Shown here piece after piece: positions 18,142 to 58,203 of a stretch of 64,000 bases of DNA. The translations under genes were made by a program, and so were the position numbers. Positions within the stretch are counted from its first letter, which is position 1, and every line of letters begins with the position of its first letter. The DNA comes from Ascoidea asiatica JCM 7603 (lineage: Eukaryota > Fungi > Ascomycota). The notes under the pieces were generated by a model. It was not told where the DNA came from and ran no database searches. It was given only the letters and a program-made list of their open reading frames with translations. The stretch covers positions 847,014 through 911,013 of the forward strand of contig BCKQ01000001.1 in the NCBI GenBank assembly GCA_001600695.1, in the 5' to 3' direction.

Positions 18142-19501
18142 AAACAAAATTTAAATTTAAGAATCTTTTAATTATTATAATTATTTTAATTATTATTAAA
18201 TTTAATAGAACATTTATTATAAAAAGTTATTATTAATTTATATTAATATGTATTTAGTTGTAATGGATAGGTCTATCTAGATGATATTTAATATTGTAAA
18301 AGTATTTATTGAAGCTATATATTTCGAATTGCTTGATTATTAAAATAAACTATTAATTCTAATAATCAAGGGATTACTTATTTATATAAATGGGATAAAT
18401 CCTATGAATTGATTAGTAATGACACCTAATGCGGAATGGCCCACTAGTGTTCATTACATTAGTAAAATAGACCTTGAGACCAATATTTTGGGTCGTATTC
18501 GGAGTTTATGTCATGCAGTTCATGCAGATATTGAATGTGTAAGTATGCATGATGTATGCGTGTGCGGGTATGCGTGTGCGAGTATGATGTATGTGTGTGC
18601 TTAGAAATTGTGGCGTAAAGATTTAGATATTGCGCGCATTTCGGAATTAGTTTTTGTGTTGCGTTGATTATGATGAAGATGCGTTGCTGTAAATGCGTAC
18701 TAAACGTGTTTCATCTACGCAATTGTATTACAATAGCACTGCAATAGCATTGCAAAAGCGTTCCCAGAGCGGAGTTATCTGATTACAGCGGTGATATTGC
18801 GCGGTTTTGCTCCGCTCGGAAGAACATTGAAATAAGCTGAGCATTGAGCTAATTTGTTTTGGGTGCGAGAAGTCTGAGACAGCGAGAGAAGAGACAGAAG
18901 GAGAAGAAACACCAAAGGAGGAAGAAGAAGAAGAAGAAACAGAAACAGACTCAGACCACGACAAGACAAGACAAGACAAGATAAAACAAAACAAGGTGAG
19001 GGTCAGACGAGTGGGAAGAGAAGAGAACAGAAGAGAACAGAAGTGGGACATTTTTAAGAGGCTGATTGAAGCGAATGAATGTTATTGATAATAAATACAT
19101 TCTCTTCTGTATTCTTTTTCAAATAATTCTGAATTTGTGTCATTGAGTTGATTCTGACTACAAAAGAGGAGATTGAGACTGAAATGACTGGAAGTGATGC
19201 TATTATTATTGTAGTTATTATTGTAGTTATTATTGTAGTTATTATTGTTGTTATTGCAGTTATTGTTATGTTCTTTCTTTCTCTTAGATAAGATTCACCG
19301 CGTATTTTCCAAATTTCGGTTTCACCGCTAGTTAAAATCATACTTAAAATCATAGTCAAAATCTGATAACTCAAATGAAGTTTATTTCAATATGGAAATT
19401 GAATCAAAATTGTAAATGAATAAAATATTTACTATTTAAACAAAAGATATTCCTCTTTATATATTATTTAATATTCATTATTCAATTCAATTATTTTCAA
19501 A

Positions 19502-20302
19502 ATGTCAATGTTTAGAACTCTTCAATCTTCAAAGGATATCATTACAATATTGTAAGTCATTTATTTTCAACTACTTATATAATATATTATACTAATGTAT
19601 ATATCAAATATACATTCATTACTAACAAATATTTTATAATTAATTAGTCATTTATCAACATCTCAAAAATCAATTAATCTTTTAAATACTTTACAAAAAA
19701 ATCAATATATTTATCCATCAAAAGTAAATAATAATACAAATTCAATTTCAATTTCAAATGATGAAAAATCATTATGGAGAAAATTAAAAGATAAAAAAAT
19801 AGAATTTAAAAATAATTTAAAAAATAATTTAAAAAATGATTTAAAAAATGATTTAAGATATAATATTGATATTCAATTAAATAAATTTCCAACTTATAAT
19901 CAATTAAATTTAATTCATAATACAATTAATATTAATCCAATTTGTAAAAAAACTTATTTAGAAACATTTCCAAAATTTTTAAAAATTGATATTAAAAATA
20001 ATTTATCATTATCAAAAGATTTAAATTCAATAAATTTTAAAAATGATATAAAAAATCCATATAAAATTAAAATTAATGATTTAAATTTAATTTCAAAAGA
20101 TGAATATAATAATATTATTAATAATTATAATTTTAATCAAATTATTTTAAATAATATTTTTAATCCTCCATTAATTATTGATTGGTCAAATAATTTAATT
20201 TGTAATAATGATAAAGATTTTATTGAAAAAATTTTAAAACATCATCAAAATGATGATTCTGATGCTATTGACAGAGATCATGATAATGAACTTAACATGT
20301 AA
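19502..20302 (+). CDS. FMP46: Fmp46-like mitochondrial thioredoxin-fold protein (DUF1687); exons 19502-19551 and 19648-20302, 234 aa
   Basis: Intron GTAAGT(19552)...TACTAAC(19620)...TAG(19647). Splicing gives MSMFRTLQSSKDIITIFHLSTSQKS...FPTY.Q...FNPPLIVDWSNN. Not in the ORF track. Confidence 0.85.
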
Positions 20303-20548
20303 TCTCTTCTCTTATCTTCTCTCTTTACTTACTTACTTATATATATATATATCTATTATATATATTCATTTACGTATAATATAATAAATTTTAATTAATA
20401 TTCTTTATATAATATGAAAGTGTATGAATGTCGGATGAATTTATTATTATTATATACAGTATAAAAATAGACTTTTTTGCCGTTTTCGATTCAATCCAAA
20501 GAAAATAAAGCAATAATATATTCAATAACAAAAGGAAGTGAGTAAGTG

Positions 20549-21085
20549 ATGGTGGAATATAAGGAAATATTAATAAATAGATTAGATCAAAGAGATTCAA
20601 ATGAATCTAAAAACATTGAAATATTCATATCCTTTGAGAAATTAATAAATAGAACTCTTAAAGCAGAAAATATTAATAATATTAATAATATTAATAATAA
20701 TAAATTTTATAAAAATGAAGAAATTTTAAATTTAAATAATAATTTAAAAAAACAAAAAATTTTAAATTTAAATTTAATTAAAAAATTAAATTTTAAAATT
20801 GAAGAAAATATTGAAAAAAATAAAGCTTTAAATTTAATTAATGATGATTTATTAGCTTTAAATATTCAAAATAATTTATTAAATAAAAATTTAAATAATT
20901 TAAATTTAGAAAATAAAAATTTAATTAATAAAATTTTAAAATTTCAAGATTTTAATAAAAATTTAATTCAAAATGATGATTTAATTAATTTAAATTTAAA
21001 AAATAATTTCTTATCAAATAAATTAGAACTTTTAGAAATTGAAAATAAAAATTTAATCAATAAATTAAATAGTCTCAGCAAGTAA
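20549..21085 (+). CDS. ATG16: Autophagy protein Atg16-like
   Basis: N-terminal Atg5-binding-type helix (ILINRLDQRDSNE) and coiled coil INDDLLALNIQNNLL......ENKNLI. ATG at 20549. Confidence 0.75.
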   Translation: MVEYKEILINRLDQRDSNESKNIEIFISFEKLINRTLKAENINNINNINNNKFYKNEEILNLNNNLKKQKILNLNLIKKLNFKIEENIEKNKALNLINDDLLALNIQNNLLNKNLNNLNLENKNLINKILKFQDFNKNLIQNDDLINLNLKNNFLSNKLELLEIENKNLINKLNSLSK

Positions 21086-21202
21086 TAAATGAATATATAT
21101 AAAAAGTTAACACCATCTTCTTTTTATTATTGTAGACAGTGCTAACCTTTTTTTCTGCAACAATTAAATAGATCAAAATACCTAGCAAAAACAAGTAGGA
21201 AA

Positions 21203-21274
21203 TTCCGATACCGGGAGTCGAACCCGGGTCTCCTCGGTGAAAGCGAGGTATGATCACCGTTACACTATATCGGA
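21203..21274 (-). tRNA. tRNA-Glu (UUC), intronless
   Basis: TCCGATATAGTGTAACGGTGATCATACCTCGCTTTCACCGAGGAGACCCGGGTTCGACTCCCGGTATCGGAA folds as a cloverleaf with TTC anticodon and GGTTCGA B-box. T-run terminator at 21187-21191. Confidence 0.97.
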
Positions 21275-21447
21275 ATTAGCTTGAAGTAAGTGGAAAATAA
21301 TACAAAAAGAAGAAATTTACAGTTTTCATTTCAATACTAAGAATTTGTACTATATTAACAATATTAATAACTATATTAATACTCTGTAAGTAAGTAAATA
21401 AGTAAGTATTTTTGATTAATGAACATTTATTGTAATTATATTTCATA

Positions 21448-22380
21448 TTATATTTCAGTTGAATTTTCATATTCATACATATCTAAAGCTACAATTGCAC
21501 TTTCTTTAACTACAATCACATCATCTTTTAACATATCATTTAATACAGGTAATACATCATTTGTTGCAATTGCTCCTAAAGCTTCTGCTGCTTCATGTCT
21601 TACCATTGGTGCTTCATCTTTTTTTTTTAAAATTTCAATTAATGATGGTATTATTATTGGATTACAAATTTGTCCAAAAATATAAGCAACTTCATGTTTT
21701 AATAATGCTGAAGGATCTTTAAATGATGATGCTAATGCAAGACATGCTTCATCATTACCAATATCTCTTAATCTAAACATTGCTCTATATCTATTAAATA
21801 AATTTTCATTTTGATTATTTAAAATATTTTTAAGTTCAAAAATTTTATATGATTTTTTAATTGAAAATGGTGGTGCAGGATCAATTGATGTATATAAAGA
21901 TTTTTTTAAAATTTCATTTTTTTTTTTATTTTCATCATTTTCAAAATTTATTTTCTCAATTGCTAATTCACATGTTTGCCTTATTTCAATCATTGAATCA
22001 TTTAAATAATAATATTTTAAAATTGATAATGAATTTTTATCTGATAATGCTCCTAAAGCTTCTGCTGCTTCATGTCTTACCATACATTCTTGATTTTCAT
22101 CTTTTAAAACATTTTGTAAAAAAATTGATGAATATAAATTTTTACTTTGTCCTAAAACATATGCAACTTCATGTTTTAATAATTCTGATTTATCTTTAAA
22201 ACATTCACAAATATATTCAACTGCTAAATTTGATTTTTTTGGTGTAATTTTAAATTCTTCTGCAATTGTTTTAAGTTTAAATAATGCTCTAAATCTTTTA
22301 CCTAAATTTATATCTCCAGATTTATTAATTAAAATATCTCTTAATTCTTCTAAAGAAGATAAATTTTCTTTTTCAACCAT
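21448..22380 (-). CDS. LIA1: Deoxyhypusine hydroxylase
   Basis: Four HE motifs in HEAT-like repeats (LLKHEVAY x2, MVRHEAAEALGA x2) and DPAPP. Confidence 0.97.
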   Translation of the reverse strand: MVEKENLSSLEELRDILINKSGDINLGKRFRALFKLKTIAEEFKITPKKSNLAVEYICECFKDKSELLKHEVAYVLGQSKNLYSSIFLQNVLKDENQECMVRHEAAEALGALSDKNSLSILKYYYLNDSMIEIRQTCELAIEKINFENDENKKKNEILKKSLYTSIDPAPPFSIKKSYKIFELKNILNNQNENLFNRYRAMFRLRDIGNDEACLALASSFKDPSALLKHEVAYIFGQICNPIIIPSLIEILKKKDEAPMVRHEAAEALGAIATNDVLPVLNDMLKDDVIVVKESAIVALDMYEYENSTEI

Positions 22381-22948
22381 TGAAATTTGAATAAACTTAA
22401 CTTTTATATTATTTATATATAAAAAAATATGAAATTAAAATAAATAACTTCTTAACAGTATTTATATTATTCAAATTCGAAAAGAAATAAGAATTTTATT
22501 TGAGAATTAAATCAATTTTAAACTTCGTAAACGATAAATTCATTTTCATTTTCATTTTCATTTAAAAATTTAAAAAATATTTTTTTTATTCACTTTCGGG
22601 TTCCGTTTCAAACTGCGTGACAAATTTCAGCGCATGATTTCCAAGTTTCGTTACTAAACACCCCAAACAAAAATTGCAATGGAGGACTTACGAATTAATT
22701 AAAAAAAACATATTTTCATATTTTAATTAATATTATTAATATTTAGTTTACTTACAAACTGTTTTTAATTTCTTCTTGAAATATTATTCATTTCTTTTAT
22801 TGAAATAAAATTTATCTGTTTATCGGCTACTTAACGGTTAATCAGCGGTTATTAAAAACTTATATTTAGTTAATCAGCCACACAATTTCCATTTATAGAA
22901 GTCACGTGTTTGAGGCTTGTCTTGTTATTTTTATTTCGGATAAACAAA

Positions 22949-23001
22949 GGCTATAGGCTATAGGCTATAGGCTATAAGCAAATGCTATAGGCTATAGGCT
23001 A
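22949..23001. repeat. 7-bp tandem repeat GGCTATA
   Basis: (ggctata)4 agcaaat gctataggctataggcta. Confidence 0.85.
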
Positions 23002-23277
23002 TTACAATTAAATATTCTTTTATTTTAATGGAATTGTTATTGAATTAACAGAGTCATTGAATAAACAGAGTTACTTATTTAAGAAGAGTGAGGTGATGTG
23101 AATAAAATACTTTATATAAAAGAAGAGAAAATGAATTTGAATTGAAGAAAATGAATTTTATTAATAAGCATTTGAATCAAATTTGATTGAAAAGAGATAT
23201 AGAATAATAATAATAATACAGTATGAATAGTAAATGTAATTAAGAGTTCAAACTTAAGAACTATGACTAGAACTAAT

Positions 23278-24204
23278 TTAAAGAATTGGATTTTCTTTTT
23301 TCCATCTATAAATTAAATTATAAAGATCTTTTAAAGTAAATTTTATTGAATTTTCACCAAAAATCTCTATTAATTCTTCCATCACAGTTTTTGTTGTTGA
23401 ACCATGTTTATATAAAATTATTGCTGCTTTTTCTTGTTCTTTTGTAAAAAATCTTAAATTTGCACTAAGTTTTTTATCTGAATATGGTAAATGATTATGA
23501 TTATTATTTAAATGTTCAATAATAAAATTTATATCTGATAATTTTCTTATACCAATTTTATATGGACAATTTGAACGTTTAGATGTTGTAATTCTAATTT
23601 TTTTAATACCATTTAATTTTCTTAAATTATTTCTTGGTTTACCAGATTTATCACATCTATAAATTAATAATTTTGATTTTTTATTTTGTCCTGCACTTAC
23701 AATTGAATAATTTTTTTCTTCTGCAAAATTTTTTATATATTTTATTGCCTCTTTTTTTTCTTCAAAACTTTTTATAGGAACATTTAATATTGAAAATATT
23801 TCATTATTATTATTATTGCTATTGTTATTTTCATTTTCATTTTCATTTTCATTTCCAGATAAATCATTATCTTCTTCTGCTAAATTATCACTATTTAAAT
23901 TATCATCTAAATTCAAATTAATATTATTGATATTATTGAGATTATTAAGATTATTTATATTATTAAAATTGTTAATATTATTATTTATATTATTAAGATT
24001 ATTAAGATTATTAAGATTATTAAGATCATTGTTAATTGTATTAATATTATCAATATTATTAATACTATTACTTAACAAATTTTCTTTTGTCATCATAATT
24101 TGATCAGAATTTTTATCCAAAATTGAATAATTTGATTGATTATTCGAAGGAATTATCATCTGATTCGTTTCCGAAGAATTTGAGGATAAACCATTATTAT
24201 TATG

Positions 24205-24243
<39 letters not shown>

Positions 24244-24348
24244 TTGTAGTTGATTAATTTGATTAAGCTGAGTAAGTTGATTAAGACTAAGTTGAGTAAG
24301 TCGATTGAGTCGATTGAGTTGATTTAGCTGAAATGAATCTTCTTCCAT
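23278..24348 (-). CDS. FAR1/WRKY-GCM1-type (Mutator-transposase-derived) zinc DNA-binding protein with N/Q-rich N-terminus
   Basis: F....EA..YI..FA...NY.I...YRCDKSG...TSKRSNCPYKI...HNH, then a helical segment ending TLKDLYNL. No DDE domain follows. Confidence 0.8.
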
Positions 24349-24921
24349 GATTAAATATATTAAATCTTTAGCTCTTCTAAAATTAGATCACCTACCTTTT
24401 AAAAATAATAAGTTGAATATAATAATATTTTATGAAAATGGATTTTTTAGACTATTTGCTTGTGCAGAGGAAAGTTTTGCATTTAGTTCAGGACAGCAAT
24501 TGCAGCCATGGGAAACACTGGAAGCTCTCCTTGTTTTTTATTTTATTAATTTATTATTCATGCGCCTTCTTTCAGGGGTCTCAGCACAGCCACAAATTAA
24601 AAGCCAGCGCAAAAACAACGCGAAAACTACGCCATTTGTGTTTGGGTGCATATTCAGTCATGCTGCGTAAGTTTCAGTCCACTCATAAAATATGTCGTAT
24701 TGAACTAGATCTTGATTTAGATCTAATCTCAATTTGAAAAAAAAAAAAATGTATATCATAATCTGAAAAATAAGTGAATGAGAATAATTAAAACAGAATT
24801 ATGTTTAGTAAAAAGACTAAAAATACAATTGTCAGAAGTAAGAAAAATTAAATTGTGTTAAATATATTATCATTTGTACTTTCACTTAAGTTTCTTTCTT
24901 TGAATTATGTGTTTTTTTTTT

Positions 24922-27398
24922 TTAACCTCCAAAAATATCAACTTTTAGAGACTTTAATACATTTCTCCATTGATAATCATGTTCATTCATTCCAGCTCCT
25001 CTTCTTCTCCATATCTCCTTAAGTAATAAAATAATTTTATTCACTGTAGGTATTTCAATTATAATATAATTTCTATTATTATCACTGAAATCATTATAAA
25101 GATCATCATAAATATTATTTTTATGATTATTTGCAATAATATTATCATTATTATTTAAACCATTATTATCAAAATTACAAAATATTTTAAATTCTTTTAT
25201 TTTATTTAAAAAATTCATAATTATAAATTGTGAATCAAATTCAACTGCTTCTGATCCAATTATTAAAATTGGCCAAATTAATCCAAGTAACTTTTCTTGA
25301 CTTTTATTATTAATAATATTATCGTTTTCATTGAATTCATTAATAAGGTAATTCAAATGTTCTAAACATTGATCTACCATAATCTTTATGGAATTTTTAT
25401 TATGTTTTCCATTATAAAATTCTCTTAAAAAGAATATGTAAATTGATGAATAAAATACATAAGATTTATGATATAAATAATTTTTTTCTTCAACATTTAT
25501 TAAAAATAGATAATCTGTAACTTTGGCACTATTATTACCATTTCTTTTATAATATGAGTTTAACCCTTCTAGAAATTTACTTCTATCAATTAATAAATCA
25601 TTTTTATCATATTTAGTTATTGTACTTGCTGCACTATTATTTCTACTACTTTCATTTGAACTTGATCCTAAATTTAAATTAGATTTAGAATTAGATTTAG
25701 AATTAGAATTAGAATTAGAATTAAAATGAGAATTGATGAATTGATTAGTATTATTATTTTGATTTTTATCTATTCCTTTATCCTTGGATTTATCTTCTTC
25801 TTTTATTTTATCCCTATCTATATCTTTAAGTCGGTCTTTATGTTTATCTCTTAATAAAAAAAATAATATTAAATGATATTCTGACCATAAAAAATTTTCA
25901 ACTTCAAATGATTTAAATCTAACATTGAATGAGTTTAAATTTGAACTATTATTTATATTTTCTTTTTCTTTATTATTCTTATCAATTTCTAAACTTGTTG
26001 TTATTAATATAATAAAATTATATAAAGAATGTTTACTTATTCCACTTTCCTGTAAATCTTCATCTTCATTTTCATTCGCAATTTCAATTTCAATTTCAAT
26101 TTCGTTTTCAGTATTATTATTATTAGAATTTTCATTAATTGATTCCTCTTCATTACTTGATTCATTTGAATCACTCAAATCATTATCCAGATTTTCTTGA
26201 CTTTCCAGTTCATTTTCACTTAATTCATTTGACAGATTATTTTTATTAAAATTAAGTTTATTAGACTTTAAAATATCAAAATCTTTTATATCATTATTTA
26301 AGAATGTGTTATTGAAAATATTGTCATTAAATAATTTTTTTCTTAAATTTTTACATTTTTTCTCCTTTTGTTCATTATATGTGTTTATAATATCACTTTT
26401 ATTATTATCAATATTATTATCATTGTTATTATTTTCATTATTAGTACTATTCATCATAAAATTTATATCATTTAAAAATTCAATATCATTTGAACTTAAT
26501 AGATTATGATTTAAAGATAAACAAACAGTTAAAAGGTATGAAGAAAATCTGAATAAATAAGAATTATTTCTTAAATCTAATTTAATTAATAATTTTATAA
26601 TTATTCTTACATGATTCATCCAATTATCATTAATATTCATATTATTATTTTTATAAGGTAAAATAATTCTATCAGAAATCAAAAACATTAAAGCAATTAT
26701 TAAAGATTCTTTAATTTTAAGTTTTGAATTTAAATTTGAACTTAAATTTGAATTTGAATTTGAATTTGAATTAGACTGATTGATTCCATTATTAATAATA
26801 TTATTAGTTGTATTTAAGAGATCATTAAAAGATTTAATTCTTGAATTTATTGATAATAATTTAAATTTAATGAAAAAATGATTATAATTTTTAAAAGAAT
26901 AATTTTTTTCATAAAATTTTGATAAAAATAAAGAAGAAATTGATAAAATTGAATTAAATAGAATTGAATTATTATTTAAATTATTATTATCCAATTTATT
27001 ATTATTATTATTATTATAATTCGATGAAATTAAAGATTTTATAATTTTATCAAATTTTGAAGGGAAAAGTATTGGAGAAATGAAATTTAGGAAATAATTT
27101 AAATTTATATTTATATTTGTATTTGAATTATTTGAATGAATTTTATTTCTATTTATATTTGAATTGAAATTTGAATTGAAATTTGAATTAAAACTTGAAT
27201 TTAATAAGTTTTTAATTTTCAATTTTTCATTTAATTTATTATTTAAAGTTGTATTTATATTTGAAATTTCATTAAAATTTTGAAATTGATTAAAATTTGA
27301 AAATTGATTAAAATTTGAAATTATATTTGAGTTATTTGATTGTAATTTTAATCTTTTATTTGTATTAATAATATTTTTTTTAAATATTTTATTATTAA

Positions 27399-27441
<43 letters not shown>

Positions 27442-28101
27442 AAGAAAAGTGAAAACAGTGAATGGTTTTTTAATAATTTGATTATTTTTTAATAATTTTA
27501 AATTATTTAAATTATAAGTATCTAAAAGTTCTAATAATTTATCAATTTCATTTTCATTATTGTTATTGTTATTGTTATTGTTATTGTTATTGTTATTGTT
27601 ATTGTTATTGTTATTGTTATTGTTATTGTTATTGTTATTGTTATTGTTATTGTTATTGTTATTGTTATTAATATTATTATTGTTGTTGTTATTGATATTA
27701 TTATTATTATAAAAATTCATATAATTAAATTTAGTAAAATCATATAAAATAAATCTTCTTAAATTATCAGAATTTTTATGATTCCAACATAATCTAATTG
27801 TATAACCTTCACATTTTAAACCAGATTCTATACATTTTTTACAAAATGGTTTAAATTCATCACATTTTATACCTCTTTCTCTACAAGTCCAACAACCTGA
27901 ATATGTTTTTGTCTTTTTTTTTTTAATTTTTAATGGTTTTATTGATTTTATAGGATTTATAGGATTTATAGGATTTATAGGTCTTATAGGTCTTATAGGT
28001 CTCAAAGGTTTTGAAATTTTATTTTTATTATTTGTAATATTTGAATTATTTGAATTATTAAATATGATTGAATCTGAAGGTTTTAATATTCGATTTGACA
28101 T
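24922..28101 (-). CDS. Zn(II)2Cys6 transcription factor, Arg81/Thi2-like
   Basis: KTYSGCWTCRERGIKCDEFKPFCKKCIESGLKCEGYTIRLCW, plus a C-terminal fungal TF domain (WP.LI.G.EA ... EIWRRR ... WR.VL). Confidence 0.88.
27556..27669. repeat. (TTATTG)n hexanucleotide microsatellite encoding poly-Asn
   Basis: Long, pure alternating AAT/AAC codon run inside the Zn-cluster gene. Confidence 0.9.
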
Positions 28102-31046: not shown

Positions 31047-31084
<38 letters not shown>

Positions 31085-31688: not shown

Positions 31689-31727
<39 letters not shown>

Positions 31728-37974: not shown

Positions 37975-38798
37975 TTTTATATTATTAATATTGAAATTTA
38001 GTATATAAAATGAAAAAAAGCCTAAGTTTACTATACAGAGATTTTCTTGAAGTATTATATATATTTATATATTTATATATAAATTATGGTATTATTGAAA
38101 TAAGTTAAGTTTTATACTAGTACTTTAATTTCTTTTATATTTTCTTTATATGTCTTTTATATGTCTTTTATATGTCTTTTATGTCTTATAAATTACTTTT
38201 ATTTTCACATAACACTGAGAAGATGAATAATTCATTAATAATACAAATAGAAATACAGCTTTAAGATATCGAATTAGCAGTCAGTGATCACTGTGATGAA
38301 TATCAGCAGCTCCATTACCATACTATTATTAATAATTGTAATAATTGTTATGCGATTACCCGAGAGGAGCAGATGCCCGCCAATGACCAAGGATTGATAC
38401 CCCAAAGTGCGGATTTTACTGTTTTCCGTATTACATAATCTATTATGTAATTTATGAAAAAATAAAATAGAAGACCCAAATTACTGGCGACAAATAAATT
38501 ACCAAATCGATATTTTCAATTAATGCTGACTAAGCACTGAATAAGCCATATAATATATTTCAACCAACCAGAAGATTGTAAAATCTAATCTTTTTTAAAG
38601 TACTAACAATAATCAATAATCAATAATCAATAATCAATAATCAATAATCAATACTCAATTAACAGAGGTTATCTAGTAAGATATTAAAGATATAATTATA
38701 TCAAGAAGTGTGAATTGAAAATTATATTGTCATCAGTAGAAATTACAATAACAATAACAATAACATTAACGTTATTAATAATTTTCTATTAATTAAAA

Positions 38799-40803: not shown

Positions 40804-41070
40804 TGACGTGGCCGTGGAACAGCGACAGAAGAAAACCCAAAGAAACGGTGTGAAACATGTCATGCGCACGCATGAAACCAATCGTGTGGAACTTTTAATT
40901 TGGTCACGTTTACATTTGAATCCATTGATACGGGTCTTGTTTTTTATGTTACGTAATCATGCCAGTGGCTTTGTGTGGCAAGTGTGCTGCGCCCTTTGCA
41001 CGTGCTCCTCTGCTGTGGGCTTAACTGCTTGCGGGTTCAGCTTCGGCGCGATTTCGCGTTTGCGACGCGT
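40804..41070. promoter_or_regulatory. GC-rich YSY6/KTR divergent promoter: TGACGTGG (UPRE/CRE-like, 40804), TTACGTAA (40949), SCB-like TTTCGCG (41052), MCB ACGCGT (41065)
   Basis: Consensus matches read directly from the sequence. Confidence 0.5.
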
Positions 41071-46493: not shown

Positions 46494-49400
46494 TCATTTG
46501 AAACATGAGAATGTGGTAGAACTACTTTTGACATTGCTTTCCACTAGTCTTCTGACACTTTCAATGATAACTTTTGGATCAGTTTTTGATCTCATTATTG
46601 AATTGTAAATTGTGTCTAAATCTCTCAATGATTTGGAACTGAATCCATATTTACTACTTCCATATGTATTATCAAAAATAATTTTCAAAAATTCAATATC
46701 TGAAGAAATTTGTTGAAATCCAGATACTGAAAATTCATTAACATTACCAATTTCTTCCAATAATGTACCTGTAATATATTCTTGTAATTCTTTCATAATT
46801 TTTGGTATTAAATCTTTTGAAATTAAGACTATTGATGAATGAATCATAATTAAGTATGTCAAAGATTCATAAACAAAATTACTAATTTTTTTAGGAGGTT
46901 GATTATTTTTCCAATTAAAACTACGTACCCCGGTTTTAATGATTTCACTTAGATTTTCTTTTTTTTCATTACAATAACTACTAAATATTTTTTCTTCCAT
47001 TAATGATAATTGTGGCCAAATAGTTAATGATTTACCACTTAAATTTATATTAAAAATAGAATCATAACTTTTTACAATTCCAGGTACAATTTCTTTACTT
47101 AATTGTGATAAATTATTCATACATAATAATTTGATCAAATCTCCTGCAATATTTTCATTTTGAGTATGAATTTCAAATAATTTAGATAATCCATCCGATT
47201 GATTTTCAACTTTATTTAAATTATTTGATTTTTTAGAAATTTCATTAATATTTTTAGATAATCCTTCTAATAATAATTTTAAATTAGATGAAAACATACT
47301 ATGAACGCCAACTAATGTTTCTCTTGAAGGGTATGAAATTATTCTAACATCATTATCAAAATTTAAATTATCCAATTCATCTGTTGATCTATTTCCAGTT
47401 CCATATAATAGTTTTTTATCTTGCTCAACTTTTTTTGAAAGATAATCTTGAATATATAAAACATTTTTTATACTAATCATCATTAAATTTTCATAATCAC
47501 GTATTACTTTTGGAATTGTAATCAAAGAATTTAAATCTCCATCTGAAGATTCAAGACTCAGAAATCTTAATAATGATATTGATAAAAGTCTTTCATCGAT
47601 AATATTAAAAGATGATGAATCGTTAACCCAAGTCGAACATATAGCTTCAATAATTAATCGAACTATATTTAAATGAGTATTTCTTAAAATTTCAACTGTA
47701 TTTTTAATCTTAATATTACCTAATTTTATAAAACTTGCAGAAATTGAAATTAAAAATTTTTTTAAATATCTAACTGTACCAATAGAATTTGCAAAAGGTG
47801 GTAAAAATCCATAATCATCAGGTTTACGAACTTTAAAGACTTCATTAACTTTCAATCTATCAAAAGAATTTTTTTTAAATAGAATATTTGAAAGATTTTT
47901 TTGAGATGAATTAAAGAAACTTTGTAAATTTATACAAATTAATTTAATCAAATTTTCTCCATTTTTTTCAATATTCTGAATTTCATAGCTTTGTAAAATT
48001 AAATGAGCTTCAGATTCATTTTTATATCCTTTTGGTAAAGTTAATTGAATTTTATTTTCAATGAATAATCTACATTGTGCCCAAAATAAAATAATTCTAT
48101 TTGATTCTATTATCACAATATCATCAATTAATCTTTTTATTACTAACCACATTTCAGTTATATGAGTAGAATCAACTAAACCGTGATTGAAATTATTTGT
48201 TCTTTCACTAATTGAATTTGACTTTGAACTATCGTTATTGTTCAAATTATTATCCGACTTATTATTGTCATTACTATTTTTGTTATTTTTATTATTATTA
48301 TTATTATTATTATTGTTTTTATTATTATTATTTTCATTTTCATCATTTTCATCATTTTCATCATTATTTTTATCATCAGATCTTGATAAAAATTGAATAA
48401 ATGAAACATCAGTTGAATTGGTTGTATTTAAAATAGTTTTTTGAAAAGTTATAATTTTTTTTAATAATTTTTCAAAATTTTCATTAATCTCATCATAAAT
48501 TGAATTATATTGAAAATCAATCCAAGCAGTTATTGGATTATCTTCAACACCTAATTCTAATAATTTTGATATTAAACTTATATGACTACTATCGCTTAAA
48601 GTTGTTTTAGCTAAAGCATCCCAGGTATCTTTTTTATAACTGTCAACAATTGCTTCAACTTCTTCCCAAATTCTATCTAAAACTCTTTGTGATTGATCAT
48701 TAGTTATAGAATAAGGATCATTAGTTCCAGAAATTCCTACATCCTTCTCATTATCACTATTGTTGTTATTATTAATATTACTATCCAAATCAAGATTTGT
48801 ATTCGAAGGAACTCTTGAGACATTTCTTGAAACATTTCTTGATGGATTCCTTGAATTATTTCTTGAACTATTTCTCGATAAAGATTCTAATAAAGGAGAT
48901 TGAGATAAAGGATTTCCATTTAAAGAAGAATTTGATATAAAATCTCTACCTTTTTTATAATCTTGTATAAGTGATTCATAATCATTATTTTCTATATGAT
49001 TTAATAAGGTTTTGGGTAAATCAAATAAATATCTATTTTTTTCAACAAATTTTAAAGCAGATTTTATATGTTGTTCTTTTTGTTTATTATCAATTATTGG
49101 TTTTATGATTGAAGAAACTTTTGAATTTGAAATATTTATAGTTTCTTTCAATGACATTAATTCCGTTTTTTTTTTTTCTTTTATATTTTTAGTATTATTT
49201 TTATTATTATTAAGTAAATAATCATTATCTGAATTTTCACTCAAACCAGAATTAATAAATTCTTCAAAAACTCTATCTAAACTTGATTTAACTTTAACAA
49301 ACTTAGCAAACTCATTTTCAACTAAATATTGTAATTCTTGAGATTGTTTAGCAATTGAAGATTCTAAATAATCTAAAGATTTATTCAATTGATTGAAAGA

Positions 49401-49832
49401 ATCATTTCTATGTAAAGTATTTAAGAAAACTTTAGTATTAAAATTTTTTGAACTTATTAAAAATTTTTGACTTTTTGATAAAATTTCGTTTTCATTTTCA
49501 ATTTGAGTTTGATTTTGATTTTGTAAAACATATTTTGTTCTTTGAATTGTAGATTTAAATAAACCTAAAGGATCAGGTTCATCAATTATTTGAAATTCAG
49601 TTTTATCTTGATCATCAGTTAAACTTTTAAGAAGTACAGCAGCTTTATCAACATCATTTATATCATCTTTATTATAATCAAAATCTATTGACATCCAATC
49701 ATTTTTTGATGTTGGCGTTAAAGTTTTCAATTGATAAAATTTCAATAATGAATCATCATCTGGATCAATTGAATTTTGGATATTTGTATTAGAATCGAGA
49801 GAAGAATTATTATTCTGGGCATAAGATTCCAT
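46494..49832 (-). CDS. SEC5: Exocyst subunit Sec5
   Basis: LLKFYQL, EPDPLG, FLISSKNFN...FL..LH..DSF..L, LVENEFAKFVKVKSSLD and F.LP..L. Confidence 0.92.
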   Translation of the reverse strand: MESYAQNNNSSLDSNTNIQNSIDPDDDSLLKFYQLKTLTPTSKNDWMSIDFDYNKDDINDVDKAAVLLKSLTDDQDKTEFQIIDEPDPLGLFKSTIQRTKYVLQNQNQTQIENENEILSKSQKFLISSKNFNTKVFLNTLHRNDSFNQLNKSLDYLESSIAKQSQELQYLVENEFAKFVKVKSSLDRVFEEFINSGLSENSDNDYLLNNNKNNTKNIKEKKKTELMSLKETINISNSKVSSIIKPIIDNKQKEQHIKSALKFVEKNRYLFDLPKTLLNHIENNDYESLIQDYKKGRDFISNSSLNGNPLSQSPLLESLSRNSSRNNSRNPSRNVSRNVSRVPSNTNLDLDSNINNNNNSDNEKDVGISGTNDPYSITNDQSQRVLDRIWEEVEAIVDSYKKDTWDALAKTTLSDSSHISLISKLLELGVEDNPITAWIDFQYNSIYDEINENFEKLLKKIITFQKTILNTTNSTDVSFIQFLSRSDDKNNDENDENDENENNNNKNNNNNNNNNKNNKNSNDNNKSDNNLNNNDSSKSNSISERTNNFNHGLVDSTHITEMWLVIKRLIDDIVIIESNRIILFWAQCRLFIENKIQLTLPKGYKNESEAHLILQSYEIQNIEKNGENLIKLICINLQSFFNSSQKNLSNILFKKNSFDRLKVNEVFKVRKPDDYGFLPPFANSIGTVRYLKKFLISISASFIKLGNIKIKNTVEILRNTHLNIVRLIIEAICSTWVNDSSSFNIIDERLLSISLLRFLSLESSDGDLNSLITIPKVIRDYENLMMISIKNVLYIQDYLSKKVEQDKKLLYGTGNRSTDELDNLNFDNDVRIISYPSRETLVGVHSMFSSNLKLLLEGLSKNINEISKKSNNLNKVENQSDGLSKLFEIHTQNENIAGDLIKLLCMNNLSQLSKEIVPGIVKSYDSIFNINLSGKSLTIWPQLSLMEEKIFSSYCNEKKENLSEIIKTGVRSFNWKNNQPPKKISNFVYESLTYLIMIHSSIVLISKDLIPKIMKELQEYITGTLLEEIGNVNEFSVSGFQQISSDIEFLKIIFDNTYGSSKYGFSSKSLRDLDTIYNSIMRSKTDPKVIIESVRRLVESNVKSSSTTFSCFK

Positions 49833-50444
49833 GACTAGTTTGAGTTTAAATTTTCTGCTTTATTTTCTTATTCATATCCAATGCACTAATAGTTATCATT
49901 CATTTCGATGTCATAAACAAGCAAATAAACAAATAAACAAATAATTAAATAAATTCGTAAAAAGATCAAAAAAGGCCCATTATTTTAAACACAGCACATA
50001 ATTGAGATAAACATCAGCATTTGAAGCTTGCATATTTAGGTTTAAGTCAGGGCTGTGGTTAAATCTGTAAATATGTGCGATTTTGGGAGGTATTTTTCAT
50101 GTAAGGCATAATTTAAAAGTTTAGATTGTTAGTTAGTATCCCTATATATAGAGGGTTTTCTGGTGTGCCCACCCTGTCCAATATCAGGGGATGGGTTTGC
50201 GAAGTGCCAAGTTCCCATCATCAAAAGGCTGTTTTTAATCAAGCTCAGGAGAAGAATCAAAAAGAAAACAAACCCAAAGAAATGCATTTATCAAATTGAC
50301 AATTAAAAACGTATTATATTAAGACATCTATTTCTTGGATTTTTGTATCAATTGTTATCAATAATTTGCAATTTTCAGTTACAAATTATCAAATATCAAT
50401 TATAACTACTAATATATCCAACAGATTCAAAATACTTTTTCAAA

Positions 50445-51164
50445 ATGTCAGGAGAATTACCAGCCTTTACAACCCCACAACAATTTCAAAAAAAAAGATA
50501 TAATCTTTATCATCAACCAACTGGGGAAGCTCCTTTATATAAGCAAAAACCACAAGAATTAGCATTCATTCCACAACAAGCAACTGGTGAATCTGAAGCT
50601 CTTTATAGAAATTGTGTTGGTATGTTTCAAGCTGTTGATATTGATAGATCTGGTACTCTTGCACCAAGAGAATTAGCTGATGCTTTATATAGAACTTTTG
50701 GATCAAGATTTGAACCTTCAACAATAAGATTAATGATTAAATTATTTGATACAGATAATTCTAATCTTTTAGATTTTAGAGAATTTTATTTTTTAAATAA
50801 TTATTTAAAATATTGGAGAAGTTCATTTTATCAAATGGATTTAGATAGATCAGGTACAATTACTTTAAATGAATATCTGAATACAGTCAAAAAATTTGGT
50901 TATAATTTAAATCCAAATCTTGTTACTTTTATTTTCAATAAATTTGCAAGATTTGATTATAATGCACTTATGCAAAATCCATTTTCTGGCGGTTATGCAA
51001 ATAATAATGATACAGTTAATATGAAATTTGGTAATTTTGTTGAAAGTTTAGTTTGGTTATTAAGATTTACAAATGTATTTAGAAAATATGACAGAAATAA
51101 TGATGGTGTTGCTCTGTTTAATTTTGATAGTTTCCTTTTTGAAGAATTAACTTTATTACTCTAA
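50445..51164 (+). CDS. PEF1: Penta-EF-hand protein (Pef1/peflin)
   Basis: EF loops DIDRSGTL..RE, DTDNSN.LDFREF, DLDRSGTITLNE and DRNNDG; FVESLVWL.R.T..F. Confidence 0.88.
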   Translation: MSGELPAFTTPQQFQKKRYNLYHQPTGEAPLYKQKPQELAFIPQQATGESEALYRNCVGMFQAVDIDRSGTLAPRELADALYRTFGSRFEPSTIRLMIKLFDTDNSNLLDFREFYFLNNYLKYWRSSFYQMDLDRSGTITLNEYLNTVKKFGYNLNPNLVTFIFNKFARFDYNALMQNPFSGGYANNNDTVNMKFGNFVESLVWLLRFTNVFRKYDRNNDGVALFNFDSFLFEELTLLL

Positions 51165-51496
51165 ATGATCACCATAGAGAAGTAAATTAAAATGAACCTT
51201 TTCTGTTTTTTTTTTTTTGATTTTTAGTTTATTTCAAAAAATTTGCAATTTTGTCTTGTTATTCTTATTCTTAATTCATTTCTTAATATTATTTCATATA
51301 CTTTTATTATTCTTAAACTAGTAATTTATTTTAGTTTTTTTTTTCTTCTTCAATTGTAATTAAAGTCTAAGAGACTCGATGGGTGAAGATATTCAAGAAA
51401 ATAGAGAAAAGAATATATATATTTTCTGGATTGGATTTAAATGAATATATAATTTCTGATTATGACTATTTACAAAGACACGATTTCTAGTTGATT

Positions 51497-51802
51497 TTAG
51501 TTTGGTAATTCTTCATTATGGTCCTTTTCCTTTTGAGGAAACTCGGTTGATACTTGGACACCATCTTCAGAAAACACAGGTATTGGAATATCCTGTCTTA
51601 AATGTCCATCTTTTTTTAATTGTTCTCTTTATGAATTGTTAGTATTTTAAATTTATTTTTCATTATGATAGCTCCTAGTTCATATTAGTAATATCACTTA
51701 ATTTACTCACATTACAATAGGCTGGAAAAATTTCACTCCACTATACCATCCAATAGCTGCCACTGAAACAATAGCAAACACATCAAAACCTCTAATTCCC
51801 AT
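51497..51802 (-). CDS. Small membrane protein, Ecm19-like; exons 51711-51802 and 51497-51626, 73 aa
   Basis: Intron 51627-51710 GTGAGT...TACTAAC...AAG. Product MGIRGFDVFAIVSVAAIGWYSGVKFFQPIVIEQLKKDGHLRQDIPIPVFSEDG... The FF.PIVI..L..DG.LR.DIPIP motif is recalled from Ecm19. Not in the ORF track. Confidence 0.8.
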
Positions 51803-52194
51803 TTTTATAATATTGTTTTCATTTGCTTTTTAACTTTTTTGTTCTTTTTTGTTCTTTTTCAACACTGATAGTAATAAGATAATATTCAAAGTATTAAAAA
51901 GCAATAATAATAATATATAAACATTTAAATTATCATCTTCTTCCTTCAATATTTCTATTTCATTTTATTTTTCTGGTAGGAAGCCAGATCTACGGTACTT
52001 CTTACCTTACTCTATTCTGGGAATTTATTCTCATATTTTTACTTGCATGAAAGAACCAATTTAAAAACACCAGAACCAATTTAGAAGTAAAGAATAATTT
52101 ATTATTCAGATCATTAAAAAACAAAATTAAATTGTTCTGATTATTTTTTACTGATTACTTTGAATATTTATTTCATTGAACAAATTTATAAAAA

Positions 52195-52581
52195 ATGGGT
52201 ATTTTGAGTTGGTTTTCTTTTTCTCAACCTTCTGAAAATGACTCCAATTCAGTCTCAAGCTCAAGTAAGAGCCCCCAAAGCACTATCAATAAAACAGAAA
52301 ATTCAAGTAGAGCCATAGATCTTAGTGCAAAAAAAAAAGAAGAGGAAGAGGTTTTTGATAATGATGACGATGCTGATGATGATGATGAACCTGACGAATG
52401 GGACAAAAGAATAATGAAAACTGGATGTGCAGAGGAGAATCTAAAGCTACAATTATGCCATGCAGACACTGGAGATTGGAGGCAATGTCTTAAAGAAATG
52501 GATGCATTTAAAAAATGTTGGAATAATCATAATAATAATCAAAGAACATTCACAAAAGATAATCCTGATCCGAAGGTGTAA
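52195..52581 (+). CDS. COA4: Cytochrome c oxidase assembly factor Coa4 (twin CX9C)
   Basis: DEWDKRIMKTGCAEENLKLQLCHADTGDWRQCLKEMDAFKKCW. Confidence 0.93.
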   Translation: MGILSWFSFSQPSENDSNSVSSSSKSPQSTINKTENSSRAIDLSAKKKEEEEVFDNDDDADDDDEPDEWDKRIMKTGCAEENLKLQLCHADTGDWRQCLKEMDAFKKCWNNHNNNQRTFTKDNPDPKV

Positions 52582-52863
52582 ATGTGTAGAATGATTGATT
52601 AACAGTTAACGTTCAATGAATAATGATTACAATGTGTATTATACAGTATATACTTTGAAGTATAAATTTAAATATGAAAATGTAAATGAAAATGAAAATG
52701 AAAATGAAAATAATGAAATAATAAATAAGTTCTTGTTAATAGTTCAATTGATTTCAAAATAATATTAATCTTCCAGTATGACAAATTGAATTGATCAATA
52801 TTTAATCTCATTTCGTAGTTGTGTTACTTGAAATTCTCTAAATCGATATACAAATATTTTATT

Positions 52864-53394
52864 TTATGTTGATTTATTTTCTGTAACTTCTGGTGCCTCG
52901 GATTCTTCGCTTTTACTTTCAATTTTATTTTTCAATTTATGTTTCTCTTTAGCTTGTTTTCTTTTCAATCTTTTTAATCTATTTTTTTCAGTTTTAGAAT
53001 CATCCATTTCTTTATATTTTTGTTTCAATTTATTAAATTCTTCTTTATTTTTGATTATTTCATCTCGTTCTTTTATAATCTTCATTCTTTGAGTTTCTTT
53101 ATCTTTTTGTCTTTTATATAAATGATATTGATCAGATCCTGCCCCAGCTATAGAAGATTTAATATTATAATTTATATCTGGAATGCTTTCGATTAATCTT
53201 TTTTCTCTTTCATTATATTCTTGAATTGCATCTTTTTTCAAATCTAGTTTTATTTTTTTACTTGGATTTGATAGTAGTTTTTCTACATTTAATTTTTGTA
53301 ATTTTATAGGATCTGATATATTTGTTGATTTCGTTTTTTTATTTGGTTTGCTTATTTTAGATGTTTCTTTATGATTTTTCATATTTGAACTCAT
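52864..53394 (-). CDS. PRKRIP1-like (DUF1168) spliceosome-associated protein
   Basis: SS.AGAGS..YH.YK....E..R motif and KTEKNR.KR.KRK. Confidence 0.82.
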   Translation of the reverse strand: MSSNMKNHKETSKISKPNKKTKSTNISDPIKLQKLNVEKLLSNPSKKIKLDLKKDAIQEYNEREKRLIESIPDINYNIKSSIAGAGSDQYHLYKRQKDKETQRMKIIKERDEIIKNKEEFNKLKQKYKEMDDSKTEKNRLKRLKRKQAKEKHKLKNKIESKSEESEAPEVTENKST

Positions 53395-53917
53395 GCCTTT
53401 TTTTAATTGATTAATTATTCAATCTTTTAACGTGTTAAATACTTGAATCAGTAACTTCAATTAATTTATTTGAGGTTTTATAACTTATATTAATAAATAA
53501 GTTTAATCTTTATCTCGATAGAATATTATAAAATAACCGACTGTCAATACGCACTGCAGTAATATTTTTTTTCTAAAGTTTCACGGCTTATGAGAAAAAT
53601 CGTATAATCTTTTCCTATTTATCTCCTAAGATCCTAATAAAGATTAAAATGAAAAAGTATATAATAAAGATATTAGTAAAAGAGATTTAAATCAATTCAT
53701 TGACCCGATGTTAAGAGTGCTTTACTAATTGATATATGCTACAAATCTAGTATAAATTAATAGTTTTAAGATGATGAAATGGGAATATATTATTGTTTAA
53801 CTAGCGTAATAAATTTTAAGGCATAAAAAACTAAAAATTAGAAATAAAAAAGACAAAAAAAAGAATGTAGATGAAATAATCTATTTAAATAATTAGGATG
53901 AAAAAAAAGAAGAAAAA

Positions 53918-55189
53918 CTAAAGTGGGTATGAATTTGGTTCACTTTCATTGGTATAACCTTCAGCTTCTTGTTCTTTTGCTCTTTTTTCAAGATATGGTA
54001 ATAAAATATCTTTAAATTTAGTATAACCTCTATATTCTTGAACATCCTCATCCCAACTATTAATACCATTTAATAATCTTCTTGGTACATATGGTTCTTC
54101 ACACATTTTTGTTACAGGTAAAAAATAAGTTCTAATTGTAAAAGCAATTGAACCAGTTTTTGGTAATCTACTAACACTTTGTCTTTCACTTCTATAATAA
54201 ATTTGATTAATAGTTGTTGCTTCAGGCGCAGTATACCAACCAATTGGATCAGTATCTTCATTACCAATTGAAAATGACCAAGCAATATCATCATCAGTTT
54301 GAATGAAATAATTATTTCTTACAACAGGTTTATCACAAGTTAATCTTGAAAAAAATTTATCCATACTTTTTCTTAATTTTTCATTATATTTTGGTACATC
54401 AGCTTCAGTATGAATTGCATATAAAGGTAAATTAAGTTTATCTTTTAATCTCCAAAAACCTGCTAAAAGAATTGCACCAGCTTTTAAATAATATAAACCA
54501 TCTTCACCTTCAATCATTATAGCTAAATCATCTTGAGTTAATTTAGCTGCAATTAACATTGGATCTTCTTTTAAAGGTCTTTCAAGTATATTAAAAGTTT
54601 CTTTGGTTACAAGATTATCTAAAACTCCAGTTTCAGGATCATATTTAAATAAAGTTGGATATCTTTTACTTAAATAATCAACTAAATTTTCAAGATATTC
54701 ATAAGCAGCATTCATTGCAATTGGTAAAGTACCATATAATTCTTCACCTTTTTCCTTTATTCTTTCTAATTTTCTATTATGATATTTAAGCCATTGATTA
54801 TCTAATTCAATCCATGAATTCCAATCCATTGATCTTATACCCATAGTAATATAATAATTATGTTTAAAAGCTCTATATGGAATAGGTTCAGTTTTTTCAA
54901 TATCCCAATTTTCAAATGGAGTTGGATCAGGTCTTTTAAAATCTTCTGGAGTCCAAGTTCCTGGAATTCTAGTTTTATTTTTAATTACAGCATTACTTAA
55001 TGGTTTTGATAATGTTTTAGATTTAGATTTAGATTTTGTATTTGAATTTGAATTTGTTGTTAAAAAAGTTTTAATTGTTATAGTTCCAATTATAGAAATT
55101 AATAAACCTGATAATACAATATATGAGGAATAATGCTTTTCACTAAATGAAGATTTTATATTTGATATTGAAGCTAAAACAAGAGACAT
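53918..55189 (-). CDS. DUF3445 / HRQ-family (heme-dependent oxidative N-demethylase alpha-like) protein with N-terminal TM helix
   Basis: PYRAF, ITMGIRSM.W..WIELD, QDDLAIM, GFWRLKDK, IH...VP.Y..KL, RNNYFIQ and RSERQS..RLPKTG...FTIRTY. Confidence 0.85.
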   Translation of the reverse strand: MSLVLASISNIKSSFSEKHYSSYIVLSGLLISIIGTITIKTFLTTNSNSNTKSKSKSKTLSKPLSNAVIKNKTRIPGTWTPEDFKRPDPTPFENWDIEKTEPIPYRAFKHNYYITMGIRSMDWNSWIELDNQWLKYHNRKLERIKEKGEELYGTLPIAMNAAYEYLENLVDYLSKRYPTLFKYDPETGVLDNLVTKETFNILERPLKEDPMLIAAKLTQDDLAIMIEGEDGLYYLKAGAILLAGFWRLKDKLNLPLYAIHTEADVPKYNEKLRKSMDKFFSRLTCDKPVVRNNYFIQTDDDIAWSFSIGNEDTDPIGWYTAPEATTINQIYYRSERQSVSRLPKTGSIAFTIRTYFLPVTKMCEEPYVPRRLLNGINSWDEDVQEYRGYTKFKDILLPYLEKRAKEQEAEGYTNESEPNSYPL

Positions 55190-56794
55190 TTTTAATATAA
55201 GTTATAATATATAATTTATTATATTAATTATATAAATATATTAAAAGAAATAATGTTATAAAAATTATAATGTGAATATAATGAAATTAAAATGAGATTC
55301 AAATTAAAAATAAAAATTAAAAGGAAACAATATTAGAAGTATTTATATTAAGTATTAAATAGATAAATGATAAAATTTAAATTAGAAATTATAGATTAAA
55401 ATTTTAAATGTAATTAAATCAGCTAATTAAAGAATTATGATTGATAATTGAAAATTGATAATCTATAATGGAAATTTATTGGATCAAAATATCATAAGGG
55501 AAAAAAATTTAAGAATTTTAAGAATTTCAAGGAATAAGGAATAAGGAATTCCATATTTTACAAATTGTTATTACTATGAGTAAGTAAATGGATGTGGTTT
55601 AATTTACCTATTGAAAACATATAAGCAAAATGATTTTTCAATTATTTATTTACTATTTACTAAGCTTATTTACTGTCAATAAAATTAGTAGTGAAACTAG
55701 TTATTAATTAAGATGAACTTTGTTTATAATTTCAGTATTATATTAAGGAATATAGTTTTTTCTTCAAAGGTATTAAAATCAGAGAAGAATATTATAACTG
55801 CTTTAGTTAAGGTTGCGAAATAATTTTAAGTGTTTATTGATTATTGCTATGCAGAAAGTTTGATTTGAATTCTAGTTGAATAAAGTGCTGTATGTATGAT
55901 AAGAAGAAAACTTCCGAATTGGGTTAATATACGCATCGCTCGATGATGAAATCATTCACTATGGTTTTGTAGGGTATTGTATGGTTTGGTTGGCATATAT
56001 TTTATTCGTCTGTCTGGTTTAATAGTGGGATTTTTTATTAAGAGTAATTACATAAGTAATGAGTAACTAAAATTAATAATAAATAACGATAATACTAGAA
56101 TAAGTTGGTTTTGGGAGTCGTCAATTGTAAATAAAAACAAAGAACATGAAAAACATTATAAAAATCACCTCATTTTTTGTTGAGGAAACTTAGAAAATTT
56201 TAAATACATTTTTCAATAGAGTCTATTTACATTTGAGAGTGTTTCTTTCATGTAATTAACATCGTAATTGATAGCATTATTATCATTTTTATCATAATCA
56301 TCGCAATTCTTAAATCAAAAAAGTGGATTAAAAACGAAGTTTCCGAGAAGCAAAGCAAAAAAAAGAAGTTTTGGCAATCAATTTTTCAAGTTGCTGAGAG
56401 ACCATCTTTGTGGGTCTTCTTTAAAAAGTAATGACGTGTATTGAAGCAACTACAAGTTGTTCCATCCCTATGGTGGTACCATTGTAATGGATCCCTGTCA
56501 AGTGACACAAGCCAATATAAGAGATCGCCCCCGTGAAGATTAAACCCAAAATAAACCCAGATCTGAAATATTTTTGTATTGAAGCTAGTTCCAAATTTCT
56601 AATTTTCGGATTCCAGTTTCTGATTTTGGGTCTTGCTTTAATTTTAGGTCTTGAAAGTGATCCAGTCCTTCTACATATTTTTGATTTATTATTTTATTGT
56701 TCTTTTGTATTGTTCAGTGATTTTACATAATTGATCTGAGAAAAATGCTATTCTAAAGTAAAAAACTGATGAAAAACTGAAGCCAAAACAAGAT

Positions 56795-57535
56795 TCAGAG
56801 AATATTCCAAACATCTTCACACCCATGACAAAATTTACTGCAAGCTACAGAAGCTGATAAAGGATATTGAGAAACACCAATTTTTTCATCAATCCATTCA
56901 TCAGCAAAATTATCTTTACCTCTTGCCATTGCACCAACAAATACACATATACTTTCATTTTCACCTAAAGTTTCAATATAACTTTGAACTTTTATTACTG
57001 GAGCTTCAAATGATAAAGTAATTTTACGACAATTTGTTGGTAAATGATCTGTAATTGGATTTTTAATAACTTTTAATAATTTCTCTTGAGAATTTACACT
57101 TCTTATAGATAATTTATGTAATAATTGTACCATTAAACCTGAAAATCTTTTAAAAGTTCTTGGAATTCTAACACTTGGATTAATTTCTATTAATACACCT
57201 CTTGCAGTTTGTATATAAACTTGTAATTTACCTGCTTTATTAATTGGTGAATCTAATAATGTTAATAAACATTGATGAGTTATATCTGGTCTTGCTTCTG
57301 CAATATCTCTACCCATTTTTTTCAATAATCCTTGATGATCATCACAATTCAATAATGCATATTTATCTCCTCCAGGTCCTCCAGTACTCATCTTATGAGT
57401 CTCGAGACATGCCTGTGATAGCACTACTATGAGTCTTTTAGTATCTTTATCCTTTGAAGTTAATGCTTGTGGTCTCTTAGGCACTAATGAAGATGGTAAT
57501 TCCTCACCTGTTTTCTCTTGTTCTTCTCTACCCAT
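56795..57535 (-). CDS. NEP1: 18S rRNA pseudouridine methyltransferase Nep1/Emg1
   Basis: [44 protein letters not shown] and YPLSASVAC. First ATG at 57535. Confidence 0.97.
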
Positions 57536-58203
57536 TTTCAATATTCAATTTCACCTATTCTTCCTAACTAAACTATTCTCCAGTCAATACACTATATTAT
57601 AATATGAAATATCAGATTATTGTCTTTCTTCTTCTTCTTCTTTCTAAATCTGTCAACAGTTTCGATTTCTCTTTCAGACTCTGAAAAAAATAAAATTTGC
57701 CAGATTTTTCCTGGAATTCTCTGCCGCTTCTGCCTCCGCATCCATGCACACGGAAGACCCTCCGAAGGCTAAATACCTTTCGAAACAGGACTTTAGCAAA
57801 TATTTCTAGTGCTCCTTAATAAAACGGGCTTTGAAGTTAACCATACTGATTAGCCACTCCTGCACCTGTTGTTCTCCCTGTACTTAACAGAATACCTTCT
57901 TGCTTCAACCTCTCAGTCCCCTAGTAATTTTAATATTAATAATCTTTAATCTATTACTTTGGTCTAAGATTTATCGGAACTTTTGATTATTTAAACCTTC
58001 TGTTGATTTAGCACCCAAAACATAAATTAATCTTAAGAAATGTATTATTAATCTAATCATTGCTTCAAAATTAAAAAAATATTCAGTATTTATATATATA
58101 TATATATATAGAAGGATATATATTCAATTGAAAAGAAAAATAACTAATATTGTTAAAAATTTTGTTAATGAATACATAAATATATATATACAATTACTTT
58201 TTA

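Follow-up and report, generated by a model that had tools for sequence, protein, structure and literature searches.

The stretch of DNA analysed here, referred to as the window, comprises 64,000 nucleotides of contig BCKQ01000001.1 of the yeast Ascoidea asiatica JCM 7603 (GenBank assembly GCA_001600695.1; C1:847014-911013). Its genes, whose best protein matches come from Ascoidea rubescens at 69-71% identity, are accompanied in several promoters by a 23-bp bipartite element with the consensus GARACCA-N6-YGG(G/T)TCTYCT, which occurs singly, in a group of three, and in a seven-unit array (Table 1). This array is spanned with 0 differences by a public contig, which may derive from the source strain, and the FMP46-like (DUF1687) gene, starting near 19503, was identified by tblastx to a DUF1687 gene of A. 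rubescens. A sequencing run considered for footprinting yielded 293 bp at a depth of 2.7, again free of differences, and most likely reflects cross-contamination. The matrix and the gene-level tests reported below are based on a local sample of 264 kb of contiguous DNA (the window plus contigs L001-L020), of which 67% is coding. Sites were called at a matrix score >14 bits, and the matrix used for cross-validation was trained on 28 sites, all of them outside the window. Open reading frame calls missed small and spliced genes, and left spliced genes unjoined, so that a few intergenic regions are misclassified.

Table 1. Copies of the element in the window, and the genes on either side of the array.
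Feature	Position	Strand	Score and context
RSC9-like chromatin remodeller subunit gene	6780..9236	-	array 315-483 bp upstream
Seven-unit head-to-tail array	9542..9732	+	exact 28-bp period; 14.4-24.2 bits, cross-validated; divergent RSC9 / acyl-CoA ligase promoter
Long-chain acyl-CoA ligase (FAA2-like) gene	10360..12873	+	array 640-808 bp upstream
Single element	18476..18498	+	23.5 bits; 344 bp past the stop of an F-box/UIM gene, ~1.0 kb before the FMP46-like start
Single element	38469..38491	-	16.5 bits; divergent RIB1 / NUEM (NDUFA9) promoter
Element 1 of 3, KTR mannosyltransferase promoter	40830..40852	-	18.4 bits; divergent with a putative small spliced YSY6-like gene
Element 2 of 3, KTR promoter	40874..40896	+	17.3 bits
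Element 3 of 3, KTR promoter	40918..40940	+	21.5 bits
Single element	51980..52002	+	19.5 bits; 205 bp upstream of a COA4-like CHCH gene, divergent with a putative small spliced gene
Near-consensus element	56398..56420	+	26.9 bits; 387 bp past the NEP1 stop, 1.2 kb upstream of a DUF3445/HODM-like gene
Weak, doubtful element (56479 of the earlier note)	56472..56494	-	9.0 bits, background

The element is confirmed as real in the A. asiatica genome, whose assembly comprises 20,313,720 bases in 71 contigs. The pattern GARWCCA-Nk-YGG has 970 genome-wide matches at k=6, compared with 68 at k=5, 65 at k=7, and 59 for a reversed control; since the pattern was derived from 0.3% of the genome, this test of the spacer is an independent one. 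The window on its own is suggestive, weak evidence for the spacer preference, with 22 matches to the loose core CCA-Nk-YGG at k=6 versus 0-14 at other values of k, and it is the genome counts that are decisive. When promoter DNA was scanned without bias for every spaced pair of trimers, CCA-N6-TGG ranked first, with palindromic pairs counted double. Scaling from the local sample, we estimate a genome-wide total of roughly 1,000-1,700 sites. No description of the motif was found by a search of the literature, which covered text only and included no matrix comparison with motif libraries.

An earlier note on this DNA had proposed, from ten quoted strings, an element common to many promoters, with a spacer fixed at 6 bp and flanks that match the units of the array. 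All ten strings are present where it had placed them, and the proposal is borne out by the spacer counts given above and by the promoter location described below. With respect to the flanks, the matrix trained outside the window recognises both the array units (14.4-24.2 bits) and seven of the ten sites, namely, those at 18476, 38470, 40837, 40874, 40918, 51980 and 56398 (16.5-26.9 bits), which are genuine elements by this cross-validation. The three others, at 56462 (6.6 bits), 56479 (9.0 bits) and 57742 (4.6 bits), lie at background level, where shifted-spacer controls match as often, and they are probably chance occurrences.

Sequence information is close to zero beyond the 23 bp of the element, and there is little of it within the 6-bp spacer. 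The inner CCA and YGG are symmetric, and the outer AGA/TCT is shifted by one base on the right arm. Genome-wide, the arms combine as left-right 68 times, and as left-left or right-right 0 times each. A symmetric homodimer using either arm would be expected to give at least about 34 sites of one symmetric class, and the site is therefore obligately polar; the partner arm is present at 18 of 20 non-coding GAGACCA left arms. The same counts speak against a symmetric homodimer site of the Gal4/Leu3 type, which was rejected; this leaves, from the dimeric factor envisaged earlier, a heterodimer as compatible with this polarity.

Same-strand pairs of elements at periods of 24-32 bp number 109 genome-wide, compared with 10 in controls. 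For 100 of these 109 pairs the periods are distributed as 24 bp, 1; 25 bp, 0; 26 bp, 7; 27 bp, 25; 28 bp, 31; 29 bp, 18; 30 bp, 12; 31 bp, 5; and 32 bp, 1, with 74 of the 100 pairs listed being head-to-tail neighbours at 27-29 bp. The abrupt lower limit of the period suggests steric exclusion, and its peak suggests contact between neighbouring units. Spacer identity is 0.26 and 0.37 within arrays, 0.37 between arrays, and 0.30 between single sites; identity is thus no higher inside an array than across arrays, and recent tandem duplication is not how the arrays arose.

These observations bear on a reading of the units as remnants of a small mobile element, sites of a recombinase, tandem repeats of recent origin, or a repeat-spacer RNA. 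Such origins could be argued from the 28-bp unit with its free 6-bp centre (11+6+11), which has the geometry of a tyrosine-recombinase, dif-like site; from five GCR1_C (Crypton-type) domains found in the genome; and from the folding of the 9542-9732 array (z=-2.5). We nevertheless hold them to be very improbable. First, the lack of information outside the 23 bp and the mutually unrelated spacers do not fit a mobile-element relic or a miniature inverted-repeat transposable element, and periods range between 26 and 31 bp. Second, there are no Crypton insertions in Saccharomycotina according to Kojima and Jurka (PMC3212892). Third, the centroid structure of the folded array is weak, its z-score arises because the units are pseudo-palindromic, and there is no Rfam match; on these grounds and because of the unrelated spacers we rejected recent tandem duplication, a CRISPR-like array, and a structured RNA. 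The sole Rfam match in the window is a tRNA-Glu(TTC) gene (21202-21275, minus strand). A telomere-repeat (Rap1-like) origin seems less likely, since none of the pairs listed belongs to a perfect array at the end of a contig; a telomere repeat of Ascoidea was not found in the literature.

The element is confined to promoters. An untrained pattern gave 24 non-coding matches versus one coding match in the 264 kb, despite the 67% of coding DNA. Sites were found in 12 of 26 divergent and 12 of 41 tandem intergenic regions, that is, in 24 of the 67 regions bearing a promoter, and in none of 22 convergent regions (Fisher p=0.0005 by region). Most sites lie 190-700 bp from the start codon, and 33 of 43 fall within GC-rich promoter islands. 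As to base composition, G+C in the window is higher in intergenic (26%) than in coding DNA (24%), with islands of 40-50% in promoters; proteins contain very long asparagine runs, and the codon CTG is rare (87 of 59,237 codons).

In tandem regions the clusters lie closer to the stop of the upstream gene than to the start of the downstream one (mean relative position 0.34, n=11, p=0.03), which hints at a boundary role, a comparison that is confounded by long AT-rich leaders. Barriers formed by Reb1, TTF-I and Sap1 are typically strictly polar and arrayed head to tail. The element, which shares both features and has clusters so placed, could thus be a polar barrier or replication element, namely, one that blocks read-through transcription or the passage of replication forks, or one associated with origins, with promoter activation as a secondary effect. 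We consider this improbable, given that orientation with respect to the gene is unbiased (12 versus 11), that sites are most frequent in divergent promoters and absent from convergent regions, and that 1,000-1,700 sites would be many for origins. Moreover, roadblock activity normally accompanies general factors as a side function, and this explanation therefore overlaps with the general regulatory factor that we favour below.

The genes adjoining the sites are functionally diverse. They include genes for ribosome biogenesis (RIX1, an LSG1-like GTPase, and an SSF1-like Brix gene), traffic (YPT6, VPS16 and SYS1), and glycosylation (PMT and KTR), together with TFC3 (TFIIIC), GCN1, ADE12 (purine synthesis), RSC9 and complex I. 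A U3 snoRNA gene is also preceded by one element, about 230 bp upstream; there are two such genes, ~49 kb apart (L008:257-560 and L012:9166-9469), and it is the L012 copy that has the element. On account of this diversity in the 264-kb sample we rejected a mitochondrial or lipid regulon, which the earlier note had offered next to a general regulatory factor as the type of its factor, and of these two options only the latter is supported. The regulon did have in its favour the neighbours NUEM, COA4, FMP46 and the acyl-CoA ligase within the window, as well as NDUFA5 and MRPL49, which adjoin sites outside it. Yet most targets are unrelated to these functions, and with about a third of promoter regions bearing the element we give a regulon scarcely any credence.

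Other motifs occur in the same promoters. Sites resembling those of bZIP factors, TTAC(G/A)TAA, are found at 38431, 38443 and 40949 of the window and also near elements in L003, L006, L007 and L008, several of them within 12-60 bp of an element, and they may belong to a partner factor. They are present in 10 of 24 element-bearing promoter regions versus 6 of 43 element-free ones (p=0.017, confounded by length). Cbf1 sites are enriched in the sample (13 versus 2).

Among known site types, that of Abf1 (RTCRY-N5-ACG) offers a close functional likeness, being bipartite, asymmetric, with a fixed free spacer, orientation-independent, and present at about a thousand or more promoter sites of housekeeping genes, but its sequence is unrelated to the Ascoidea consensus. 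The Abf1 motif is not enriched genome-wide (451 versus 1808 in a reversed control that is inflated because it lacks CpG), with local shuffles likewise giving no excess, and the BAF1_ABF1 domain (PF04684) has no match in the genome, although control genomes are equally silent. Abf1 sites are not known to form tight phased arrays. The sites of Reb1 and TTF-I (TTACCCG; Sal box) are also polar, form tandem arrays at barriers, and in the case of Reb1 share CGGGT with the right arm; the Ascoidea arm, however, reads YGGGTCT rather than CGGGTAA, and requires a second, obligatory arm 6 bp away. Reb1 motifs are not enriched genome-wide (308 versus 352 in the control). The CArG box of Mcm1 and other MADS factors (CC-N6-GG) and the everted sites of Zn2Cys6 factors (Leu3, Lys14) resemble the CC...GG or CCR...YGG core, but in Ascoidea the CC and GG are 8 bp apart (CC-N8-GG), the spacer is not limited to A/T, and no symmetric pairing of the outer arms occurs, so that the site is polar and not a CC-(A/T)6-GG palindrome. 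Abf1, Reb1 and Mcm1 sites were therefore rejected on the basis of their differing consensus, with the lack of enrichment counting further against the first two.

The factor could instead be a broad condition-specific (developmental or stress) regulator, such as a velvet heterodimer, or a heterodimer of Zn2Cys6 proteins on everted CCR/YGG half-sites like those used by the Zn2Cys6 factor Lys14. For the velvet proteins, the Ryp2/Ryp3 heterodimer of Histoplasma recognises the motif GAACCATGGT, an asymmetric site whose halves resemble the two arms of our element minus the spacer, and VosA occupies over 1,500 sites (PMC4999599). The Ascoidea element differs in its inserted 6-bp spacer and its longer right arm. 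Velvet dimers cover ~10-11 contiguous bases (PMC3876986), not 23 bp with a 6-bp gap, and the contiguous, spacerless form of the arms is unenriched. As the targets moreover look like housekeeping genes, we regard a condition-specific regulator as unlikely.

The element extends to A. rubescens, where four units at exactly 28 bp, with an inverted unit adjoining, lie 240-320 bp upstream of GET3, and where the promoter of one KTR paralogue has a site (L021:18951, 17.4 bits). The spacer preference is the same, with 5 sites >14 bits at k=6 versus 0-2 for other spacers. In that species KTR mannosyltransferases are encoded by four tandem paralogues (L021:13212-20681), compared with one gene in A. asiatica. 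No strict element pair was found at GET3 of A. asiatica (C4:586585) among the pairs listed, and the RSC9 homologue on contig L032 has no site in the only 260 bp available upstream. Two Saccharomycopsis species, one assigned by inference, gave 0 sites >14 bits in 28.7 kb of non-coding DNA, which excludes the density of A. asiatica, and that of A. rubescens only weakly.

Taken as a whole, the sequence evidence makes it likely that the element is bound by a general regulatory factor specific to the genus Ascoidea, one that contacts DNA asymmetrically and whose bound copies pack side by side. The genome-wide copy number and, in the 264-kb sample, the confinement to promoters, the unrelated housekeeping targets and the use of either orientation are those of such a site. 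Four observations weigh on the other side. First, about two thirds of promoters lack the element. Second, the absence from convergent regions reaches only p=0.06 when judged by length. Third, site density is several-fold lower in A. rubescens, with 5 sites in two clusters in ~46 kb of non-coding DNA versus 37 in 86 kb in A. asiatica. Fourth, the orthologous A. rubescens promoters of NUEM, RIB1, FMP46 and the ligase are without a site. Because A. rubescens nonetheless has an array, the motif and its phasing are kept while individual sites and arrays turn over, which is as expected for a factor's binding site.

The candidate binder would be a promoter factor of the Abf1/Reb1/Rap1 functional type, present in abundance, constitutive and sequence-specific. 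It would read two unlike arms, separated by six free bases, over ~23 bp, and thus be either a heterodimer or a single polypeptide in which two different DNA-binding modules are combined. Copies on neighbouring sites would pack head to tail with a gap of 4-6 bp, giving rise to the 27-29 bp arrays, and stacking may occur where stronger occupancy is favoured. We infer binding by a protein, exclusion of nucleosomes and a boundary role: most likely, the factor would keep housekeeping promoters nucleosome-free and mark their upstream edge.

It is tempting to speculate on a bolder version of this general regulatory factor, to which we attach a minor though not negligible probability, in which Ascoidea recruited a new class of protein as a genome-wide promoter opener. 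This could be a velvet heterodimer whose spacing has changed, or a DNA-binding module domesticated from a transposase or recombinase (Crypton GCR1_C, Mutator FAR1 or pogo type), binding cooperatively head to tail as short filaments on arrays that are phased at 28 bp and would have arisen independently at different genes. Tentative leads to a candidate protein are the velvet-like arms, the GCR1_C domains with the recombinase-like geometry, and the CGGGT of Reb1-type sites. Autoregulation was rejected as a route to the factor, as the array neighbour RSC9 is not a sequence-specific factor, the GCR1_C gene at C1:742493 has no upstream site among the strict matches listed, and the FAR1/AFT-like gene of the window has none. 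The latter gene (23278-24348, minus strand) encodes an asparagine-rich protein that carries a FAR1/AFT-like (WRKY-GCM1, Mutator-type) domain, lacks a transposase core, and is probably a domesticated DNA-binding protein. Elsewhere in the genome, two adjoining GCR1_C-domain genes have open frames of 653 and 1753 amino acids (G000:C2:2280974-2284421), and a 999-residue, probably Pdc2-like protein with a DDE_1 (pogo/CENP-B type) domain (L017:4425-7421, minus strand) has one element 256 bp upstream.

General regulatory factors set promoter opening in yeasts and have been swapped in evolution, but little is understood of how a new one originates and spreads to a thousand promoters. Species remote from S. 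cerevisiae rely on general-factor sites of other kinds, with repertoires that differ by lineage (Tsankov 2010; PMC2897762). The candidate motifs of that study, in which other sites likewise replace those of Abf1 and Reb1, are 6-7-mers accompanied by nucleosome data, whereas the element of Ascoidea, a genus outside that study, is a 23-bp bipartite site in phased arrays. It provides a long and sharply defined site whose phylogenetic limit is clear, as it was seen in two Ascoidea species and not in the Saccharomycopsis sample. Its natural multi-site arrays are ready baits for isolating the candidate factor, whose size and cooperativity are predicted by the fixed 27-29 bp packing, and the arrays could become promoter parts for Ascoideales yeasts.

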